A stretch of 60,082 bases of DNA, filler included, from Platydemus manokwari (Eukaryota): NCBI GenBank assembly GCA_037951405.1. It is 5 parts of 5 records of this genome, joined end to end, with 100 filler letters (N's around TTAATTAATTAA, not from the genome) between each part and the next. Parts side by side here need not be neighbours in the genome. Positions count along the whole stretch, not along the records: positions 12,870 to 26,286 come from JBBMOY011736953.1; 4 more parts are not named here. The stretch is one strand, 5' to 3'. Positions 12,870 through 26,286 of this stretch are shown piece by piece. The position numbers and the translations under genes were made by a program. Numbering within the stretch: the stretch's first letter is position 1; every line of letters begins with the position of its first letter. Below the pieces are notes generated by a model. The model made no database searches. It worked only from the letters and a program-made list of their open reading frames with translations, and was not told the origin of the DNA.

Positions 12870-14710
12870 TTTGAGCACATATCTTATCTTGTCCCTTATG
12901 TTTGAATCTCATTGAACTTTTATCTTCTTCACTCATATATACTGTTGATCTTTCCTTAATTCCTTTTTCAGATGTTTCTCGATCACTATTAGGTAAATAA
13001 CTTTCCGCCAACTTCGTCTCTTTGAATATTTTTCTATTTACTGCCTGTAATTTTTCTTATTTTAACAATATTAAAGGGCATTGGTATGGGTTTGCCTTAT
13101 GTATAATTAGTGATATTCCTATGTCATTTATTTCTTTTTCATATTCACAATTTATCCATGTTGGCATTTTCTTAGTCTGATCATCAAATGTAGATTGAAA
13201 TTCTATTAATTCTATGATGTAATGTCTTAAGGCTACTACATTTTCTTATTCCACACTTGGTATTCTTATCCCTTACAATATGCTCTGTCCTTTTATCCTG
13301 CAGGTTCTATTGTTTGTCTAGTTATTCCTTTTCCTAATCATATTGCATATCTTCATTTATTATGTCAATAACTTCCCTAGCTGTTTCCATTGATTATTCG
13401 GTTTATTTCTTCTCTGTATTTACTCGTACAATGGTCTAATGCCATTATTTGCAAATTTTCATTTTTATATACTTCTTCATTTTGATTAAATTCTTTAATT
13501 GCCTGTGTATGCATTTGTTTTTTCTCTACTGCGCGGGTTTCGTCACAAAGTGCTTGTGTTTTATATTTGATTCTCCATTTTGCTTTTTCGTCCAAATCAG
13601 AATCTTTAGGTGGTATGTTTTTTTCATTAGGTATCATGGGATCATCGTTTCTTTTGATTTTATTTTTAATTTTATTTTTAACTCCTGGTGGTCTTCCTCT
13701 AGTTTTCCTTCTCATTGTTTCCTGATCTTTTAATCTTATATTATTCTTTGATTCCCCGTCTGTTTCAGTTCTCTTTTCTAAAGGTCCTTCTTTTCCCTTT
13801 ATATCTTGTTCTTCTATTTCTCAATTACTATTGTAATTATGTGTGGTCAGATGATTTATTAGTTCATTAATTGCTTGGCTTTCTATTGACGTTGATGGTA
13901 TGTATTCTTCTCTTATCATATTTCCATAATTATCATATTGGAGTTGTGGTATGTGTCCGTAATTATCCTGTAATTGGTATTCCGGTGGAAATATTGGTTG
14001 TTGTTGTACATGTTCTTCATCGTATATAAATTCTTCTTCAACCTTATTTTTTTTCTTCATCATCATTATTCATTTCCGGTATGGTTAAATTTATTTCTTC
14101 TCGGAATGGGTAAACTATTTTCTTAATTTCTATGTTGATTCGTTTACGATTGCTTTGACTTCCAAAACATGGATCATGATATTGCCCTTGTGGACATCCT
14201 ATACAATTCTCTAACTCATCTTACTGTTTCCTTATCTGTTTATTCATCTTACATGTTTCTGATGATTCTATTAATTTCATAAAATCTTTTCCTGATCATT
14301 TTGTATCTTCTGATTTTTTAATTTCTTTTTTCTTCTTTGATGTTTCCTTCCGTTCCTTATTACTCTTATCATCTCCACTTGCTACTTCATCTATTATTTC
14401 ATCCAAATACACTGACCTTTGCCTATTAAGTTTTTTTTCTTTGCTTTTTCCTCTACATTTTATCATTCTAATTTTCTTCGATCTCTTATCTTTTTCCACT
14501 ATTTTGTTCATAACTATACTTCTATTATGTTTATTTCATCATCTTTTAAGATTTCCATTGATTTTCCCAATCTGCATTTCTTTTTATGGTAAATTATCAC
14601 ATTTAAGTGTATCATTCAACTCTGCTTGCTGCTTGCCATACTATTATATTTTTAAGATATTTTATTTTAGCATCCATAGGCATAATTTTATATTCTGTTG
14701 TTTTAAATGA
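12870..14710 (-). mobile_element. Decayed long ORF with an AT-hook, probably transposon-derived (gag/ORF1-like), truncated by the gap
   Basis: Intronless chain of minus-strand ORF pieces (14296-14511, 13821-14066, 13377-13715, 12870-13011) separated by stops and frameshifts. Strong A-rich coding-strand skew. RKTRGRPPGVKNK AT-hook at about 13675-13712. No catalytic domain recognised. Confidence 0.5.
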
Positions 14711-15970
14711 GCATGTACTAGCTTCTATCTCAAATTTTACTATGAATTTTGTTTCCTCGATTACTATATTAATGACTAAATTTATTATACGGTAATGTTA
14801 ATGGTTTAAATTTTATTATATTAATGCCAGTTTTCATGAATTATAGAGCCTATTAATTGTGGCCTAAATTATATTATATTCCTATTGGTCACAAAATCAC
14901 CGTGAATTCACATAAAAAACTATTATACGTAAAATAAAAAATTATACATTGATACACATAATTATTTCAGTTTCAAGAATCGTCAAAAGCTCCAAAACCA
15001 AACATTAGTACTATTAAATATCCACTATATATTTCAATAGCTGATTAATATTTTAAATTTATAGAATTATAATCATTTCTACTAGAATTAAAAGCTTTTG
15101 CATTTATTATTTAGATAATTGTTTTATTCTTTCCAATATATTTCATGATCAATTATTATTATCTATATTTAGCATCCATATTTATTATTACTTTATCTCA
15201 ACAAAACGTAAAAACTAGAATTAGAAATTAACAATAACGATTAACAGATTAAGACAAATGTGTTTCACACAGAATTAATACAATATGCAGCAATAATCAT
15301 TGAATAAAAAGTCATGTTTTAATCAGATTCTCAACACATACTTACCATAGCTAAAATTGTCAAATATCCCTAAATTAGCTTAAATATATTACTATTGTTT
15401 TGGTGGGTTATTATTATTGTTATTGATAGATACCGAATCCCAACAATTACATTACTCAAAGAAACAGTACATCCCTAAGAAACAGTATATTTGTTATCGA
15501 AATCCAAAAAATTCGATTTAAATCCTAGCAATCACAAAATGTTGCCTAATAGCTAACTAATTTTGTTACATTTTCTAATAATCGGATTTATCAAATCGTT
15601 AATAAAATTTGTAAAATTGGAAATTCAAGAACTTGTATGTTAATTTTGAATATCCCTGAAATTTAATTCAATTTACTCTAAATCAAATTGAAAGTTACGA
15701 AATAAAAAATATAAAAATAACTTAAATTTTTTCTGTAACTTGTAAAATTAAAAATTTGCAAGCAAAAAACCAATAAAATAATATAATTTAATTTATTGTT
15801 TAATTTTAACTTAATGCAAATTAATATATCAAAAGAGGAAGATAAATTTAGTTTCTGATGATCAAAGTCCCGAGTTTTGAAGAGTACTGTGAGGTGATTG
15901 GTATTCATTTTTTAAAAAATTTAAAACAATGTAATTATCCAACTCAATATCTCTTCGTAAATGAATTACT

Positions 15971-18900
15971 TTATATCATTTCATCTTCACCATCTTCTGC
16001 ATCTACAATTTCTTCATCGTTCTCCTCCACTTCTGCTACTTCATCCTCATTTTCAGCTTCCTCGGCATTCACTACCTCTTCTTCTTCATCATATCCACCT
16101 CCCATATTAAGATCCATTTCAGGATCCTTTTGAGGTGATTTCGGCTTATCTTCAGATTTTCCCCCATCTTCTTCCTCTTCTTCATCATCAACACTTATTT
16201 CAATATAATCTTGTAGAAGTGCATTTATCTCATCCTTTGCTTCATTAAACTCACCTTCTTCCATTCCTTCTCCAACATACCAATGTACAAAACTTCTCTT
16301 ACTGAATAATACATCAAATTTTTGACAGAATCCTTGCCAAACTTGCTCAACAGCTGTTGAATTGGTTATCATTGTCACGTTACGAGAGCTTTGAGCCATT
16401 TCTGAACCCGGTACTACAGTAGGAGGCTGCGAATTTATACCCAACTTAAAGCCAGTTGGACACCAGTTGACGAATTTTATATCAGTTCTTCTCTTTACTT
16501 CGAAGATCGCACTATTTACCTGCTTAGGAGTAATATCCCCTCGATATTGTAAGCAGCAACTCATATATTTTCCTTCACTCATATTGCATGATATCATTTG
16601 ACTACTTTTTTCAAATATTGCTCTTGTTAGTTCATGAGTTGTTAGTTTTTCATGTTCTGCTCGACGAATAGAAATTATAGGTGCATAATTTATAACTGGA
16701 AAATGAATCCTCGGATAAGGTACTAAATTAGTCGACAATTGGTCTAAATCAGCATTAAGAAAGCTTTCATATCTTAATGAAACAGTGAGTGAACTAAAGA
16801 CTTGTGACATGATTCGGTTAATGTTGTTATACGTTGGTCGAGCTATATCAAGAGTATTATTACACAATTCATATATAGACTCATTATCAAACATAGCACA
16901 AATCTCCGAGTGTTCTGTTGATGCATTCATACTTAACACTGAATTATAAGGATCAACAACTGCAGTAGATAAATTATTTGAAGGAGCCACTACAATTTCA
17001 AACTTTGTTCTTTTGATATACTCTACTCCTAATCTCTCAAGTAATAATGCTGCAAAACCCGATCCTGTTCCACCACCAAGGCTATTTATGATAAAGAAAC
17101 CTTGTAACATATCACACATATCAACAGCTTTACGAACTCTTTCAACAGATTGATCAATTAACTGTTTACCTAAAGTAAAATGACCTCTTGCATAATTATT
17201 AGCAGCATCTTCATAACCAGATATTAATTGATCTGGATGCCAAAGATTTCTATATGCCCCAGTTCTTACTTCATCTAAAAATATAGTACACATGTGATTT
17301 ATTAAAATAATAGCTTTTAATTTATTAAAAAAACTTTGGATAAGTTGTTTTCGATAGAGAACTAAAATTAGTAGTTTTGTCAGAAATTCAATATTATGAT
17401 ATAATTACAATAAAATTTTCAACATCAATTTAATATTTTAAAAGATAAAATATCCAAACTATAAGCTCTCAGTCTGGGTAGTTCGTGATTGCTTATTTGA
17501 TGTAAAAAAATTAAAAAAATAAAATAAACTAACAATCATATTCAAATGATACTTCATACAAATCAACAATAATAATGTTATATCAACGTATAGAATTCAA
17601 AAAATTATAAATGTCAGTAAAATTACAAAATTACTAAACCTTTAAAAATTCGAAAAATAATTTAGAATATGAAGATATATTATTGAGAGTAGTAACCAAA
17701 AAGAATTAGGAACTTGTATAAGATATGAAAACAACGTAATTAAATAAAGTTTCAAATCAAATTTAAATTTTATTTTTAATAGTTCAAAATTATAGCTTAA
17801 ATTCAGTTTAATAATATTGATAAGCATTCTGTTAATCTTATGTAAAATGAATAATCGCTTAACTTCTAAATTTTATTTCTAACAAAACCGATTTTTAATT
17901 TTCAAGTCTTTGTGATAAAGAATAACTTCATACTATCTATTAGAAATTTATCTACACTTCGGTTTATGCCTTTTAAAATATACGAATTCTTATCGATAAA
18001 TATATCGATAACAAATTATGAAATCTAAATATCTTTCTAAACATTTTTATCCTTCAATTTATTTTCAAAATATTTTATAATCGAAATAATCGTATCAACC
18101 AACAACAGTTGTTTAAATTATGCATATAATCAGGTTTGATTTTACGTTGACTTAAAATTTGATATGGAAGACCATAACTTGGGTTAAGTTAATAAAATTA
18201 GTCCTTTGACTTACTTTCATAATAAATAAACTTTATTATTATAATCTAATTTATATATATTTGCATTGTTTGATTTAATCATACAACTCAGTTAATATTT
18301 CACATTTTAGGATATCTAATAGGGAACAAAAACAGTTTTAAAATCAAGGTCATATTCTAATCACAAAACTTCTATATGATTATTTGAGTTTTAAATTCAA
18401 TTTTTTATAATTATAAATCGAGTTAATTAACTACACACCTGTTTAATGATATCATTGCTTATTTTTATAAAATAATTGTAAAAATTGAGAATATCTCTCA
18501 ATTTACGTCTAATGTTAAAAAAGAGCCCTCGCTAATTTCCAATAAATGGCAATTCGACTTACTTCAATCCATTTTTCAAATAATTAAATTATGAAGAGGC
18601 TTCGAAGCTCTTGTGTTTTTAATATTTGATTTTAAACAATTAAAATTTTTCTCAAGTATTTAAATAAAAAATTCAAAGTGTTTTTACAGAATACAGCTAA
18701 ATAAATTATACAAATTTTTGAAATACACTCAACAAATTAAAAATTTTATTTGAGAACCGCTTTTTTTAACTTGAGCCAAACCATTAACCTTTTTAAAGAA
18801 TGTTTAAATAAATTATTTATAACATATAACGAAGAACATTTTCCATTTTGAGATAAATTTTATGAAGATGTAGTTTGATTCGTTTGATTATTAAAACAAA

Positions 18901-19563
18901 AAAATCTTGATAAAAACAAATAAAAACTTAATATTTAAGTAAAATAGGCTTGACTGATCTTACTGATGAGAAAATACTTAGTTTTTAGCTATTTTATGTA
19001 AAACTCGATGATCCTGTAGATGATTATTGGAACTTAGAGAACACATGAATCGGCCCTACTTACAGTGCTAACAATAGTTTATCAACCATAAATCACCAAA
19101 AAATTAGAACTCAAAAAATTTAAAAGGAACACAGATAATTTTGTGTACAAAGAAGCTTTTTTCATCTTCAATTTCAAACCAATCATCCATCTATTAATAA
19201 ATCTTCTTCTAAGAACAAGAAATTCAATAAAAATATCCAATAAATTCACCTAAAACAGTTGGTTCCAAGTCAATAGAAATAGCTCTTGGTACATATTGTG
19301 ATGCAGGCACTTCTTGGAAAAATGTTTTAAAAGCACTACTATCATCATCTTTCAAATATTCTTTGAGGATTCCATTTGCCTGTATGCCGTGTTCGATGCA
19401 TAATAATTCCCACGTTGCATTCGATATTTGTACCCCAGCTTGGCCAACATTGACGGAAATTACTTCACGCTATTAATGAGTAAAATAATCATTCGTTAAG
19501 ATAATTCACAACAAACATATGATGATTGATATTAAATAAAATAATGTAAATAATAATTACCAT
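15971..19563 (-). CDS. tuba: Divergent alpha-tubulin, 508 aa, extended acidic C-terminal tail
   Basis: Exon 1 is the ATG only (19563-19561). Exon 2, 19469-19250, reads [28 protein letters not shown]...[15 protein letters not shown]. Exon 3 is 17274-15971. Total 1527 nt in frame with GT-AG introns at positions typical of metazoan alpha-tubulins. Motifs [39 protein letters not shown] and [15 protein letters not shown] are present. Confidence 0.97.
18181..18777 (+). mobile_element. MITE family A, copy 1 (in tubulin intron 2)
   Basis: Colinear similarity to 27187-27773 and, inverted, to 59325-59907. Imperfect TIRs of consensus GGCTYAAGTTAARAAAAGGGTC. Confidence 0.8.
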
Positions 19564-20135
19564 CAAACTCGATGATATATAAGCTACTATCGCGAAATAA
19601 TAAACTAAGTTGATTAAAGGTATTTAAACAACATTGACAAAAAATAGTTTAATATTTTATATTAAATTATTGAATTTGAATTTTTTGTTGGTCAAAACAT
19701 TTTTCTGTTCTTAATTTAATCGCTTTGCTAAACAGAATTAAACTAATTATTATTATTGATAAAAAAAATTTACAATAAGAAAGAATTCTGGTTGTTTATA
19801 AAGTCTGAACTATGAGACGTATTTTATTGAAAAGTAAATCAATGTGACAAATTAGTCAAAACTCGATGTTTTAAAATAATTCAGAAAACATATTCTGCTT
19901 AATGAAAATATTAATCTAATGTAAACATAATAATAATTATAAAATAGATAAATCACAATTTCAAAAATACAGAAAATCATTTAATTTCTTTATCCAATCT
20001 AATTTCATTATAATGTTTGGTTCAATTTGTAACTGATATAAGTTAGATGTTCAATAATCAACATAATATTCAAATATAAAAGAATAAATAAGAATATTTG
20101 AATTTTATTAACATCTACAAAAGTGGTAAGAATAA

Positions 20136-23100
20136 TCATTTTAATTCCAGAGCTTCAGCAAGACTGGTTTTGAATTGATCTCGTTCTTTAATCTATTAAA
20201 ACAACAAAAAATCAAATCAAAAAAGAAAAGAAAATTAATTTACGCGCAACTCCAATTCGGTTTTCAAATTCGTTTCTGAATTCTCGAGTACAGCAATTCT
20301 AATTTCTTTTCGCTTCAATTTTCTCTCGGAATCCGATTTCAAATTGAAAATTTCTTTTTCAAAGCTGTATTCCAAAAATTAATGACAGTTGAGAAACATT
20401 TCCAAATAATCAATAAACAAATACTTTCCAGTGGTTTCAACCAATTCAGTAGATTTATTATTCAATTCTGATTGCAATTGTTCCAATTTGTCTCCACATT
20501 TACGCAATTGTTCTTGTAAAATGGTCTCATTCTACACAATATTTATTACACACACACACACGCACACACACATCAATAATATATCATGAATAATATAAAA
20601 TACAGACACTTCTCTAGCTTATTATTATTATTATTTATTTATGCATTATATTTTCAATTTAATATTATAATAATAAAAATGTTTTTTATATTGTTATTTT
20701 ATTTATTCACTAAAACGATTTATAAATATTTTATAATTAGATTATAAACAGAAATAATAATAAAATTAAATTAATTGATCATTATAATATTTATAATTGC
20801 AAGCATAATAATAACTCTTATTATCAACAATAATCTCGGCCATAATCATATTTGATCCACTCAAATTATAATTATTTATATAAATTTATTATTAATAATT
20901 ATGTTATATTAATTATTATAACAATAATTATAAAACTAAGTATAACTATTTTTAATTATATTTATAAGAATTAATAAAATTATAATTATAATTTTATAAA
21001 ATATTATTCTTGTCATTATAATTAAAGATACCAAAGTTAATAATATTATTTACAATATTAAGTGTTGATAATATTTTTAAAATTATTTTTATTTCAATTA
21101 TATTTAATTATAATCATTATATATACATGCTGTGTGATTTTTGAAGGATTGTGATAATTCCAACAGCTAGCCCACCCAAAGATCTGTTTTACGTGTGCTA
21201 ATGTCCAATAATCAATATTGAATATGATACTGAACCAACTATTTAATAATAAGCTCACTGATTGGTACAAATCTCTGACCAATGGAATCTAACTCGCTTG
21301 ACCATACACATCATTTGTAATTGCAATCTGAGCCCATATCAGTTTATTAGATAATAATCAATAATATTCACAATATAAAACATGCAATGGCTGGTTCATT
21401 AGTATTATAAATGACAAAATGATAATAATAATCAAAAAATATCTTCTAGAAATATGAAATTATAAATAAAACACAATAAAATGATAAAAATAAATCATCA
21501 TCCAGTTCGATACCTGTTGCAAATTATTGATAATCGTCTTGCTTGAGCCGACCTTGTTGACATATGTGTTCAAAATGGCTTCCATTTCTCGATTCTCCTG
21601 ACAAATAGCTTCCATATCATCAGAATGTTTTTTCATAATCTGTTGAAGCGTGTCGGAATACTGATTAATGACGATCCTATCAACCATACCACACATCCAA
21701 TCAACCATGAAATATGAATTTATTCAAATGATTACTCGTTCTCAAGCTTGCAACAGTTCAAATATTCGATTTCCTTATGCAAATAATCGATTTCCTTGGA
21801 TAAATTGGCAATTTCCGCGGACATCTTATCAAGTTCTTCAGGTTTCGGTTGATTTATTTTTAACTGATTCATTCGTAATTGCTCGAGATTCTCCTCATTC
21901 TCTCTCAATAGATCAGTTATCATAGAATCTTTCTCTTTCTCCATTTCAATGAGCTTGTTTCTATTTGTTTCCTCGATTTTTTCAATCCTTTTCTCATTTC
22001 CACTGATGATTTCCTTGATTTTCATTTCATTCTCGACAATCAATCGATGAATTTCTTCTTGTTTCTCTTGTTTAATTTGTTCAATTTCGTCCTGAAACCT
22101 TTTCTCGGCTTGTTTCCATTCCCGTTGTTGATGACGATATGATCGTTTCAACTTATCATGGACCGATTGGTCAACATATTTCTTCATGGGACTAATGGGT
22201 AACAAATTTTCTACTGCCACACTGTTTTCTTCCATTGATTCATCAGATAAGTACTATAATTGACAAAAATGGTAGTTTTATCCAATAAACCATGACAAAT
22301 TTCATTCCCATTATTATTAATTAAATTTTGATTAAAGTAATTAATTTTTAATTAACCTAATTATTAATTTAATTCGAGCTATTCCATTGACAAGACAAAT
22401 GAACATTAAAAGAGTACAAAACAACATTCTTTATCGAATAAATCGTGACCATTTCATTACAATAATAATTAATTAAATTTTGATTAAAGTAATTAATTTT
22501 TAATTAACATAATTTTTACTTCGATCGATATATATATATATTTATCAAGGATAATATGCATTAAATGTACCACAAAGAACACAATTACTGAAAAACAGTC
22601 ACAAAATTCTCATTACAATTGATTTCATTCTGATTAAATAATTAATTAACTAATTAATTAAATTCAAGTAATTGATTGACACATGTAATGAGAATTATGC
22701 GACGAAAATGACATTTTTATTAAAAATAAATCCTAAAAACATTATTACAAATTATCAAATATTAAATTTCCATATATTTAGAATAATTAAATTATTTATT
22801 AAAAATATATTTATTAATAAAAACTTATGTTATTGAAATATTCAACACAATACTCAAACGAAAAGAGAATTTATTATTTTTAATTGTCAATTTACAAGAA
22901 AATATAACAATGAATATTGTTTCCTACCTGATTATCAAAGGAAATATCTTTCAATGGATAAGATTTCTGTTCACAACACAAAATATCGTCATTCTAAAAA
23001 TCCATCAATCAACATTAATAGTTCAATGAAATCTAATTGCCAACATGGAATGGATCAAATGGTTTCTGATTGTTTTCATCAACTTTTTCCATTTCATTAT

Positions 23101-23589
23101 CCACGTTCTCCAAATTAAAGAAATTCCAAGACTGGTCCAATTTGCTAAAGTTAATTCAACAATAATGATTGCTTTTCAAAGTATAAATTCATGATCTCAT
23201 TACCCAACGGAAGAATTAAGTAAACTTTTACGATCCTCTTTTCTAACACATTCCGAACTCGAATACGGATTTAAGGGATCTAAACTAATCAACAATGACA
23301 TTCGCGAAGTTTTCTGCTTATAAATTAATAAATCCATAGCAAATAAGATATAAATGTAATTACGGGTTTTATTACATCTTCCATATCTAAATAATTAAAT
23401 CCAGATAATTTAATAAGGTTAAATTAAAAATACCTGAATTAATATTTTCTTTGTCTAATTCTGATAAAGAGCTCTTATCTTCGAAGCTAAATAATATTTG
23501 GCAATGAAAGAATTAAAAACAATAAGAAAATCTACTAACTTTACATTTGAGTGCGAGGAAAGTAATTCAGAAAAACTATAATTATCCAT
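20136..23589 (-). CDS. Coiled-coil protein, 456 aa, probable divergent TACC (transforming acidic coiled-coil) family member
   Basis: Eleven exons: 23589-23540, 23486-23434, 23386-23364, 23316-23204, 23144-23045, 22993-22928, 22253-21736, 21676-21514, 20531-20425, 20364-20244, 20192-20136. They give 1371 nt in frame, all introns GT-AG, eight of them 47-60 nt. AATAAA at 20104-20109 on the minus strand. TACC-like motifs: SLLISLDPL (cf. SLYLKFDPL), FDPF, ENEIVINQYSDTLQQIM, NETILQ and RKEIRIAVLE near the C-terminus. The gene structure is well supported; the TACC identity is about 0.5. Confidence 0.85.
20548..20572. repeat. (CA)n microsatellite next to a splice acceptor
   Basis: acacacacacacacgcacacaca is directly visible. 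Confidence 0.9.
22291..22703. repeat. Intronic local duplication plus small foldback element
   Basis: The ~70-bp unit ...ttaattaaattttgattaaagtaattaatttttaattaac occurs at about 22291-22360 and 22444-22512. Inverted arms gtcacaaaattctcattaca (from 22598) and tgtaatgagaattatgcgac (to about 22704). Confidence 0.7.
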
Positions 23590-26286
23590 TATTAGTTATG
23601 AATTTAATTATTTAAATTGTGGTAAAATGTCTTACTACTTTTATAAACAAATTAAACAATTATTACTTTTATTAAATCAAATAATAAATGTTTTTAAATT
23701 AATTAAATACAAATATTTATTATTTGAAACGAATGCATAAAAATCGTACAGAGTGTAACTGTTTTCATTAATAATCATTTTAATATAATATCAAACATCT
23801 AACCAAATGCAGCAGAGCAAATTACACATCATAAATTAAAAATCTTACTAAGTTGAAATTAATTAAATATTTAAATTAATTGTTTATCTTTATGAAATAT
23901 GTCCATTTTGTCAATCGTTTGTGGTAATTATCTTTTAACTTTGCTACAAAAGAGTAATCTTCTGATCGTTGTCTTGGACTACACAACTAAGTAAAAATCA
24001 TTTTCCATGAAATGCAAAACTACTTACAAAAGTAAATAAAATTTAGCACATCCCATATCTGTGTTAACTTTATCTTATTATTTATTCGTAAATTAATTTT
24101 TCTGATTTGAAGTTATTATTTAAAGTTATTATCTCAATTTCTTGAGTATACAGAACCTAAGCTTCAGCATGGATAAGAGTTCAATATAGGTGGAATTCAT
24201 TAACATCTTTACACTAGCTACCTTTATAATAAATCATGACACCAAATCACATCAATATTCTTCAACCTAAAGGAATAAGAAAGCCTTGATTAAAATCGTT
24301 CCTTTATCAAAATAAAATTTACAAATAATTCAATTGAAAAATAATAGATAGTTCATATACTTCCTCTAGTTCATCTTTAATGAATTTCGTTTGAGTATGT
24401 TTTCCAGAATTTTCTTTCACAAATATGAAACTATATCGAATATAATATCGGACTGGAGATTTAGTTTATTAGTCACTTTGAAGTATTGATTTGTAATCAG
24501 TAGTGCTACGATAGCGGTGTAAATAAATAAATTATTCGGATGGTGCGTGTTATTTTTTTCCATTTAATTGATTTCTTTTAAGTTCTTATAATTGCTCGAA
24601 TTTTTATTTAAATTTGTAATTGACATTTATATGATCCTTTTTTGTTAAACTACTTTAATGGATTTTATTATGGATTTTATTGTTGTCTTTAAGTACAAAG
24701 ATCTGAAAATAAATCACCTCATCAATTCCTACAGTAATTTTTGAGGTTTATTTTTACTATAATATGCAATTATTAAATCAATAATCTAATCTTTCAGCAT
24801 CAAACTTTATGGGTTGGTTAAGAATCTTTCCTACCGATGTTAGCAATATATAAATGTAGCAAACATTTACATATATTATAATCTCTACGTAAACTCATTA
24901 GAAGTCAATATGAGTAATTCAATAATTAATTCATACCAGTATTAACCCCATAAATCAATGTTCAGATAAATCAGCAACGGTAATGGAAAATAAAAGTGCA
25001 GATCAAGATAGGGAAAAGATTCAAGGCCATTTAACTTTTAATATCGTTCTTTTCATAATGTTAATAGAATGAACATTCAGAATCGGCCTGAGCATCCTCA
25101 TGCTGGATTTCTAGTCTTTCACTATTGCACATATTTTATTTTAGCGCTATAATTTTCCATTTATTTAATATTGTGTTTCTTGATTTAGTTTTCACACAAA
25201 ACGCAAACTTATTATTTTTGTGCTTTAATTATAACTATATTTTCTAATTTTTGCAAATTATTCCAAATTTTTGCGAATAATCAACCTACAATCTAATTCC
25301 ACTTACAACTATATGGACTGATACGGATAAGAAAAGCCTTCATTTATTGGACCAATAACGAATATAGAAAATTTTTATATATTAATGAGTTTTGAGTAAT
25401 GTTAGGCAAAAGTTGTATTATATGTAGAAATCCATCTTGCTTTTCATTTTACATAAATTTTCTCAATTGAAGTAAAATTCAAAAGTAATACATTTTTGTC
25501 TAGAACCTATCACACGACTGTATTTAATTTAATAAACTGATGTCCAGGCTTGAGACTTCAAACAATGAAGTATCAAGTTAAAAATTACTCTTATACCTTA
25601 CCTTCTGAGTAAAAACCATTTCACTCAATAGTAATGGGCCAATTTCCACCTTTAATAGATAAAACTAAACAGATTATATTTCAGTAATTAATGAAATCTC
25701 TATGTACCTGTAAAATAAGCTCGATGATCTTAACTGAGTGATTATCTGACCTCTCCTTTATAGATTTTAATTTGGTATAATGTTTAATTTACATAGGATT
25801 TATTCAACGATAACTGAACCTCACGTAGTTTTGAATGCATAAGTAAAGTTTAATGAGATAACACAAATATTATGGTAGCAATGAAATAAGAAATATTTAT
25901 CACAAAACAACGAGTCTTATTTATCATCCTCAAAGTTCTCATCCCCAAACAACTAGTCCTTAATCATATTCTCAAAGATCAGACAATACAGACAAAAACA
26001 AAACCCAGCAACAAACCACCGTGGATACAGATGTAGACCACTATTTATGCAATTATATTTGGTGAAAATATTTTCTGACTTTGAAAATTATTTAATTTTG
26101 ACAATTTCATAAATTTTGACTTCCGTTTCAAATTACCGATATGGCAAAATTTTATGATTTTTGACGGATATTGTAAATATTTGATTTTAATAAAAATAAT
26201 ATTTATTTGGAAAATGTTGTTAAGATAATTGCTCAATATAATAAAATATATAGTAATAATAATAATGATAATATTGATAATAATAA

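Follow-up and report, generated by a model that had tools for sequence, protein, structure and literature searches.

The window analyzed, a 60,082-nt stretch of Platydemus manokwari DNA (GCA_037951405.1), contains an alpha-tubulin gene of three exons, coding for a product of 508 amino acids; the gene and all of its features described below lie on the minus strand. Exon 1 (19561–19563), assigned from the sequence and a splice model, comprises the ATG start codon only and is followed by the donor GTAATT; the cDNA-derived relatives compared for this exon begin with MREVIS (P0110) and MKEIIC (P0084). Exon 2 (19250–19469, 220 nt), recovered by tblastn of the spliced protein against the genomic piece, lies between the acceptor TTAATAG and the donor GTGAAT. 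It encodes residues 2–74 and the first base of codon 75. The nucleotide-binding loop GQAGVQ lies here, as does the H1-S2 loop, which is divergent and has one residue fewer than in canonical alpha-tubulins. Exon 3 (15971–17274), identified from the ORF list and from the Pfam and PDB matches, encodes residues 75–508 and the stop codon, covering most of the GTPase domain with the tubulin signature GGGTGSG (17057–17077, invariant in both multiple alignments), as well as the intermediate domain, the C-terminal domain, and the tail.

The spliced reading frame is unbroken (1527 nt, 508 codons and a stop), and both introns have GT/AG borders in the splice model. Intron 2 (17275–19249, 1975 nt, about 21–25% GC) is a phase-1 intron located before the Asp of DEVRTG, a position identical in three related genomic loci (L001–L003). 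The sequence-only reading, which had described an intact ORF with conserved introns and no appearance of a pseudogene, is borne out by this gene model. Intron 2 also holds a very high-copy repeat, roughly at 18289–18812, with summed contig depths of 3.5e3 to 1.7e5 in the repeat bins of run X1; this run is DNA, since its contigs span introns. Scans of the genomic piece for Rfam families and tandem repeats found nothing relevant.

The exon 3 product matches the Pfam families PF00091 (Tubulin; 129.1 bits, cut-off 33) and PF03953 (Tubulin_C; 143.5 bits, cut-off 26.6). The best 60 of its 168 PDB matches (E <= 1e-30) are all alpha chains, with E-values of 1e-154 to 1e-146, and the protein nests among alpha-tubulins in trees rooted on beta-tubulin. 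Judged by overall similarity, the TNLVPYPR motif and tree position, it is unambiguously an alpha-tubulin. The contacts of the non-exchangeable GTP (N-site) are present (Q11, A12, Q15, D69, E71, D98, A99, N101, S140, G143–G146, T179, N206, Y224, and N228), except that E183 is replaced by Asp. Lateral and longitudinal lattice elements are conserved in the alignment, as are K352 and the motor-binding glutamates E415, E417, and E420 of helix H12. Position 40 aligns to Leu instead of Lys40, and the DKTIGGG context is missing. The C-terminal tail (15974–16195) comprises 74 residues after DYIEI, of which 36 are Asp or Glu and 4 are Lys or Arg; it ends with -DEMI and lacks the terminal Tyr of the canonical short acidic Glu-Tyr end used in the tyrosination cycle.

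The site in question is the 23-residue segment of the T7 loop and helix H8, encoded at 16709–16777 and delimited from the sequence, HMMER and multiple alignments. The interval given previously, 16720–16780, covered most of this segment and missed its final codons, those for VPYPR. Residue equivalence follows from a HMMER alignment to solved alpha-tubulins (E ~1e-153), gap-free in this region, and from multiple alignments; canonical numbering is used here, the Gln at position 254 being residue 253 of the protein itself owing to the missing residue in the H1-S2 loop. The codon CAA (16739–16741, TTG on the plus strand) places Gln at the canonical catalytic Glu254, GAC (16742–16744) places Asp at Thr253, and AGC (16763–16765) places Ser at Gly246 of the GxxNxD motif of the T7 loop. 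All three replacements had been read from the DNA earlier, and both the minus-strand codons and the alignment agree with them. Asn249 (AAT, 16754–16756) and Asp251 (GAT, 16748–16750) are kept, and V250A and F255L are further departures from the canonical sequence near the site. Consequently, the catalytic motif GxxNxDxxE, whose Glu254 is the GAP residue for the E-site of beta-tubulin, is altered at its first position (Ser246 for Gly) and its last (Gln254 for Glu). The segment LNADLDQL is locally similar to the T7 loop of beta-tubulin, LNADLRKL, with Lys254. This non-catalytic residue at 254 of beta-tubulin explains why the alpha N-site below it keeps its GTP unhydrolyzed. Unlike beta-tubulin, the window protein is an alpha-tubulin by similarity, by TNLVPYPR and by tree position; the alignments and trees thus present it as alpha-tubulin by descent, yet without the catalytic hallmark of canonical alpha-tubulins.

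Relatives sharing this remodeled site were collected by several searches. A profile search of a 90%-clustered database yielded few members, its list being dominated by fused or duplicated canonical tubulins, and more were obtained by an exhaustive search of representatives and by a trematode-seeded search. In the resulting family (n = 24) position 254 is occupied by Gln in 23 members and by His in one, position 246 by Ser or Asn in all 24 and never by Gly, and position 255 by Leu or Ile in 23; the window protein, with Ser246, Gln254, and Leu255, fits this signature. Every canonical alpha-tubulin domain retrieved (n = 252) has Glu at position 254, and a comparison with the 23/24 Gln of its own clade indicates that Gln254 is not there by chance. 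The relatives retain Gln254, with no reversion to Glu. The named members belong to the planarians Schmidtea polychroa and Dugesia ryukyuensis and to six trematode genera, Fasciolopsis, Fasciola, Opisthorchis, Paragonimus, Echinostoma, and Calicophoron; the flatworm label rests on these, most of the 24 being unnamed database sequences. The family was not found among the vertebrate sequences retrieved.

Phylogenetic analysis (IQ-TREE, LG+F+G4, 60 sequences, 372 columns) recovered the family as a monophyletic clade of 23 tips with UFBoot 93; the trematode subclade, subfamily A, and the pair formed by the window protein and P0003 each received UFBoot 100. There are several family paralogues per genome. 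Among full-length members with a scorable tail, 43–108 residues follow DYxE, and the tails of subfamily A contain 33–36 Asp or Glu. On the alignments and tree, the window protein does not stand alone as an odd isotype: it belongs to an old flatworm family with multiple paralogues that has remodeled the T7-loop/H8 motif to S-x-L-N-x-D-L-x-Q-[L/I].

The gene is under strong purifying selection. Comparison of the core with the closest relative (359 codons, NG86 values) gave dN 0.038, dS 1.70, and omega of about 0.02, a value that is only approximate because dS is near saturation; dN in the tail is 0.41. The Gln254 codon itself differs synonymously: L001 and L002 use CAA, L003 uses CAG. Neutral drift, which the sequence-only reading had kept in view, is not borne out by these values. 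In X1, the only public run, a contig built independently is identical to the gene over 15800–17282, with zero differences, and has CAA at the codon with no variant.

Two planarian proteins in the same clade, both mRNA-derived, are the closest named comparisons: S. polychroa Q7Z1L8 (P0084) and D. ryukyuensis A7M6D9 (P0110). Like the window protein, they have Gln254, Ser246, Leu or Ile at 255, and a long non-canonical tail. Their identity to it is only 57 and 54%, respectively, and they belong to other subfamilies, that of S. polychroa differing by the replacement of D251 with Asn and of R2 with Lys, and that of D. ryukyuensis by Leu253 and a basic, Ser-rich tail. A literature search found no paper remarking on the loss of the catalytic Glu in either protein. 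Outside the flatworm clade, non-acidic residues at 254 occur in other natural alpha-like tubulins, from Tetrahymena thermophila (XP_001021180, Gln), Sparganum proliferum (BHF84084, Gln), and Paragonimus westermani (KAF8569058, Ala). These fall outside the clade in both trees and are much more divergent, and several of them have also lost D251 or N249.

Glu254 of alpha-tubulin is regarded as an invariant catalytic residue on which dynamic instability depends, and its mutation is dominant-lethal in yeast. Studies of GTP lattices rely on engineered E254A, E254N, or E254Q tubulin. QM/MM calculations assign to E254 the role of the base that takes the proton from the lytic water (PMC10319017). Human alpha-E254Q tubulin is hydrolysis-deficient: its lattice contains GTP throughout, no catastrophes occur, and EB3 is bound all along the microtubule (PMC11893814). 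The window protein, having Gln at 254 and no carboxylate there, carries the identical substitution at the identical position; E254A and E254N have been engineered as well (PMC7018511, PMC8764682). All these human mutants are point changes in a canonical alpha-tubulin, whereas the change in the window protein is natural and ancient and is accompanied by G246S, V250A, T253D, F255L, and the 74-residue tail. We infer that the behavior of human E254Q would also hold in this sequence context.

The proposed mechanism is as follows. The protein retains what is required for binding the non-exchangeable GTP, pairing with beta-tubulin, and entering the lattice. It lacks the carboxylate with which the upper dimer normally takes a proton from the lytic water at the E-site of beta-tubulin, and the GTP of a beta-tubulin below such an alpha-tubulin would most likely be hydrolyzed very slowly or never. 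The outcome would be microtubules in the GTP state, or GTP islands in mixed lattices, resistant to catastrophe. Because human E254Q is hydrolysis-dead and catastrophe-free, the window protein is, with fair probability, an alpha-tubulin whose GTPase-dead state is natural and which serves to build or dope stable microtubules.

The GTPase may instead be kept, or merely slowed, by means of another base, such as Asp253, a water wire, or E69 of beta-tubulin, so that the isotype tunes dynamics; this is the strongest of the alternatives, and we consider it unlikely. G246S, V250A, T253D, and F255L could reshape the site, and Asp253, which directly adjoins Gln254 in the window protein and in 10 of the 24 relatives, could in principle be a shifted acid. 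A comparable shift is seen in Toxoplasma alpha3, where Glu occupies 253 and His occupies 254 (PMC10056924), and the QM/MM study describes higher-barrier routes via beta E69 or phosphate oxygens when E254 is out of reach (PMC10319017). Against this stand three considerations. Human E254Q by itself abolishes detectable lattice hydrolysis (PMC11893814). Residue 253 should point about 100 degrees away, because it precedes 254 on helix H8. Finally, Asp253 is not conserved: six of the eight trematode members have Thr at position 253, and other planarian subfamilies have Ser, Asn, or Leu there, whereas Gln254 hardly varies. Compensation by the new Asp, offered by the sequence-only reading as its alternative, is weakened by this pattern and, given the lack of conservation, is unlikely as a family trait.

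Toxoplasma gondii alpha3 and its coccidian homologues also offer a parallel as natural alpha-tubulin isotypes: they lack the canonical GAP residues (Thr251; Gln or His at 254), have an unusually long tail of 48 amino acids, and were proposed to stabilize polymers (PMC10056924). They differ in their independent apicomplexan origin outside the flatworm clade, in the N-terminal MPREI insertion, and in the loss of D251, which the window protein keeps. This convergence, in which the GAP residue is lost and a long tail gained, may reflect a general path by which intrinsically stable microtubules evolve.

Less probable again is a specialized non-dynamic role outside ordinary lattices, for example at the minus-end interface with gamma-tubulin or in an axonemal or centriolar substructure, or a function exerted mainly through the long acidic tail. 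The T7 face of alpha-tubulin is the minus-end face of the polymer. Across the family the tail is very long and varies, and in the subfamily of the window protein it is strongly acidic; the presence of several paralogues per genome also suggests subfunctionalization. The conserved lattice elements, K352, and H12 motor-binding glutamates are, however, those expected of a lattice-forming tubulin, and the data contain no pointer to any specific alternative partner. That the codon reflects an error of assembly or sequencing, or that the gene is a neutrally drifting pseudogene, is effectively refuted: although the sole supporting run may be the same data from which the assembly came, the recurrence of Gln254 in relatives from many species, the very low omega, the intact frame with canonical splice sites, and the invariant codon in the run contigs all argue against it.

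Under the favored reading of a naturally GTPase-dead alpha-tubulin, the cellular use could be in male germ cells or sperm, within stable arrays such as cortical microtubules or axonemes. The S. polychroa protein Q7Z1L8 was reportedly published in 2003 as a divergent, testis-expressed alpha-tubulin. The leading sexual-specific transcripts of D. ryukyuensis include homologues of alpha- and beta-tubulin with expression in the testis (PMC6467871). By analogy with these D. ryukyuensis homologues, which are not sequence-matched to the Gln254 family, a role in sperm is plausible, with indirect support. The five described alpha-tubulin isotypes of Fasciola hepatica are mutually 72–95% identical (PMC3820024), and the trematode Gln254 proteins are probably outside this set because their identity to canonical alpha-tubulins is only about 45%. 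The spatial transcriptome of F. hepatica, in which alpha-tub1, 4, and 5 are testis-enriched, was considered as expression evidence for the Gln254 family and rejected.

A whole animal alpha-tubulin family with exactly the E254Q change and under strong purifying selection offers a natural study system. It opens the questions of how cells use non-hydrolyzing microtubules and disassemble them, whether the native lattice is expanded, and which co-evolved changes (G246S, F255L, and the long tails) remove the growth abnormalities of the single human mutant. The occurrence of the family in liver, lung, and intestinal flukes, together with its absence among the vertebrate sequences retrieved, gives it some interest as a parasite marker. 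Tentatively, and with rather less than even confidence, we propose that flatworms have kept a multi-gene family of GTPase-dead (E254Q) alpha-tubulins since before the split of planarians and flukes, forming permanently GTP-state, expanded-lattice, catastrophe-free microtubules, probably in the cortical and axonemal arrays of filiform sperm. If true, this would be the first animal case of microtubule stability hard-wired in the catalytic site of tubulin, as opposed to stability conferred by MAPs or modifications, and a natural counterpart to the E254Q GTP-cap mimic of the laboratory.

The piece of the window from record JBBMOY011736953.1 (positions 12870-26286) is AT-rich, with a GC content of 21-35% that peaks over the coding exon, and its minus strand carries a single tubulin gene. 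In the splice model, exon 1 consists of the ATG alone (19563-19561), followed by GTAATT, exon 2 occupies 19469-19250, and exon 3, including the stop codon, extends from 17274 to 15971. Both introns have GT/AG ends and the spliced coding sequence of 1527 nt encodes 508 residues, consistent with the intact, intron-containing ORF described in the sequence-only reading. The minus-strand codon at 16739-16741 (TTG on the plus strand) is CAA, placing Gln at the position of canonical E254; the nearby codons put Asp in place of T253 and Ser in place of G246, and keep D251 and N249 as Asp and Asn. The HMMER alignment to solved alpha-tubulins (E about 1e-153) is gap-free across the T7/H8 region, where a 21-residue segment of the window protein lies opposite the 21 canonical residues. 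The H1-S2 loop is one residue short, which makes Gln254 residue 253 of the window protein. The codons and the alignment confirm the E254Q substitution, and the accompanying Asp at T253 and Ser at Gly246, in every detail.

The T7/H8 motif is remodelled (Ser246, Asp253, Gln254 and Leu255). The protein retains the GGGTGSG signature, the N-site GTP contacts (Q11, A12, Q15, D69, E71, D98, A99, N101, S140, G143-G146, T179, N206, Y224 and N228), R2, K352 and the helix-12 glutamates E415, E417 and E420. The presence of these residues predicts that it should bind structural GTP, pair with beta-tubulin, enter the lattice and carry motors. The protein has lost the context for Lys40 acetylation. The C-terminal tail comprises 74 residues past DYIEI, 36 of them Asp/Glu and four Lys/Arg; its last residues are -DEMI, not -EEY. 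Tails of 43-108 residues with variable sequences occur across the Gln254 family, being strongly acidic only in the subfamily of the window protein.

Only one public run (X1) holds the window tubulin sequence; it is a DNA run, as evidenced by contigs covering introns. Its 2394-nt contig (depth 11.6) is identical to 15800-17282 with zero variants listed, and shows the same CAA codon, which speaks against an assembly error; X1 may, however, be the source of the assembly itself, and the comparative evidence is therefore stronger.

The first protein search revealed six relatives with 54-87% identity to the window protein, all carrying Gln at position 254: P0003, P0013 and P0100 (Logan), P0014 (MetaClust), and the named proteins of Schmidtea polychroa (Q7Z1L8, P0084) and Dugesia ryukyuensis (A7M6D9, P0110). 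As the three Logan proteins stem from one and the same sample, one genome has at least three Gln254 paralogues, and the family has thus already expanded within single genomes. The related genomic loci L001, L002 and L003 of Logan sample SRR33002330 (87%, 72% and 60% identity) all show the phase-1 intron of the window gene, with an AG acceptor immediately before the Asp of DEVRTG. The codon for Gln254 is CAA in three of the four genes (window and L001-L003) and CAG in the fourth, a synonymous change at a kept residue. In L003, a separate 99-aa tubulin N-terminal ORF (207-506) abuts the main ORF (503-1954), so that the intron before DEVRTG is very short or absent there, versus 1975 nt in the window. 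The closest relative of the window protein is P0003 (87% identity), encoded on genomic contig L001. Comparison of the window gene with L001 over 359 core codons (NG86) gave dN 0.038, dS 1.70 and omega about 0.02, the latter being approximate because dS is close to saturation; dN in the C-terminal tail was 0.41. On these core rates, neutral drift of the window gene is excluded.

An exhaustive profile search over 1.84 billion representatives retrieved more family members, and a further search seeded with a member from Fasciolopsis buski added proteins of Fasciola gigantica, Opisthorchis viverrini, O. felineus, Paragonimus, Echinostoma caproni and Calicophoron daubneyi. Among 24 members, eight of them from trematodes, Gln occupies position 254 in 23 and Glu in none, as expected if relatives keep the substitution, while Glu254 is present in 252/252 canonical alpha-tubulin domains of the same data set. 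Canonical Gly246 is replaced by Ser/Asn in 24/24 members and Phe255 by Leu/Ile in 23/24; Asn249 and Asp251 are each retained in 22/24. The single non-Gln member, P0160 (MetaClust UPI0006049EE8), has His254 (LDHDLVHF), as reported for Toxoplasma alpha3-tubulin. In the S. polychroa-type subfamily (P0084 and P0128), the second GAP residue, D251, is changed to Asn (NANLSQ/NANLNQ), and P0084 also carries Lys for Arg at position 2, a residue proposed to form a salt bridge with beta E69 in the compacted lattice. Judged from these substitutions, the catalytic face of this subfamily is doubly or triply disabled.

In the maximum-likelihood tree (LG+F+G4, 60 sequences, 372 columns, beta-tubulin root), the Gln254 family forms a single clade of 23 tips (UFBoot 93), including a trematode subclade with support of 100. 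The window protein and P0003 are sisters (100) within a four-member subfamily (also 100). FastTree analysis of 124 sequences again recovered a 13-member planarian-type core as one clade, this label resting on two named triclad sequences; most of the unnamed members carry no species assignment. The window protein is thus an alpha-tubulin by descent and a new member of a divergent planarian alpha-tubulin group, belonging to a conserved multi-paralogue flatworm family with natural E254Q.

The new Asp253 had been offered as possible compensation for the lost Glu254. Toxoplasma alpha3-tubulin offers an analogy, with Glu253 followed by His254 (PMC10056924). However, Asp replaces canonical Thr253 in only 10/24 members, namely the subfamily of the window protein and a few others; the trematode members (Thr in 6/8) and two planarian subfamilies lack it, and residue 253 should face another direction on the helix than residue 254. 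Such a patchy residue cannot be the basis of the conserved function of the family; a partial rescue may occur, limited to the subfamily of the window protein.

The closest natural parallel to the window protein is Toxoplasma alpha3-tubulin, a proposed polymer stabiliser with a 48-residue tail and neither D251 nor E254 (PMC10056924); its origin is independent of the flatworm family. Other alpha-like tubulins outside the flatworm clade have Gln254 (Tetrahymena XP_001021180, Sparganum proliferum BHF84084) or Ala254 (Paragonimus westermani KAF8569058). The representative search revealed many such highly divergent alpha-like tubulins (P0283, P0268, P0234 and others), among them these three and an Asp254 protein of the yeast Tortispora caseinolytica (ODV90974); the residue found at 254 was Gln, Asp, Ala, Val, Ser, Gly or Leu. 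From these sequences, natural loss of Glu254 seems commoner than usually assumed. No report of catalytic Glu loss in flatworm tubulins was found in the literature searched, which is weak evidence as most subscription journals lay outside the search.

Each beta-tubulin E-site in a protofilament is completed from above, by the T7 loop and H8 of the next alpha-tubulin. The likely functional counterpart of the window protein is engineered human E254Q tubulin, whose microtubules contain GTP all along the lattice, undergo zero catastrophes and bind EB3 over their full length, with mild growth abnormalities remaining in the single mutant (PMC11893814). E254A and E254N, the precedents invoked earlier, behave similarly (PMC7018511, PMC8764682), and E254Q adds the identical substitution. 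By analogy with these mutants, the window alpha-tubulin would most likely block GTP hydrolysis in the dimer beneath; its pure polymers would be in the GTP state and intrinsically stable, and polymers mixed with canonical tubulin would contain GTP islands. The proposed GTPase-impaired, stabilising character is supported as far as computation reaches. Retention of Gln itself, rather than any non-acidic residue, together with the fixed changes at 246 and 255, suggests an interface re-optimised around the amide.

Several other features were detected in the same piece. Within intron 2, at 18289-18812, summed X1 contig depth is 3.5e3 to 1.7e5, versus about 5-15 around it, and the contigs have many loose ends and joints, as would be expected of a dispersed repeat present in very many copies; its internal direct and inverted repeats are weak only, and an Rfam scan of the piece gave no match there. 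Two adjoining minus-strand ORFs at 21460-22235 (167 and 82 aa), Glu/Lys-rich and coiled-coil-like, had no significant Pfam match and are probably exons of a neighbouring upstream gene. Downstream of the tubulin gene, three Lys/Glu/Asn-rich minus-strand ORFs of 71-112 aa (13377-14511), likewise with no Pfam match, may be exons of another gene.

P0084 and P0110, the planarian members with names, are mRNA-derived, and a 2003 description reportedly presented the S. polychroa protein as a divergent alpha-tubulin expressed in testis. The sperm of flatworms have unusual axonemes and cortical arrays of long-lived microtubules. Among the strongest sexual-specific transcripts of D. ryukyuensis are those of two alpha-tubulin homologues, which may or may not belong to the Gln254 family, and of a beta-tubulin homologue; all three are expressed in testis, as is a homologue of a CCT subunit (PMC6467871). 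Testis-expressed tubulins and the sperm arrays thus make a role of the Gln254 family in male germ cells plausible.
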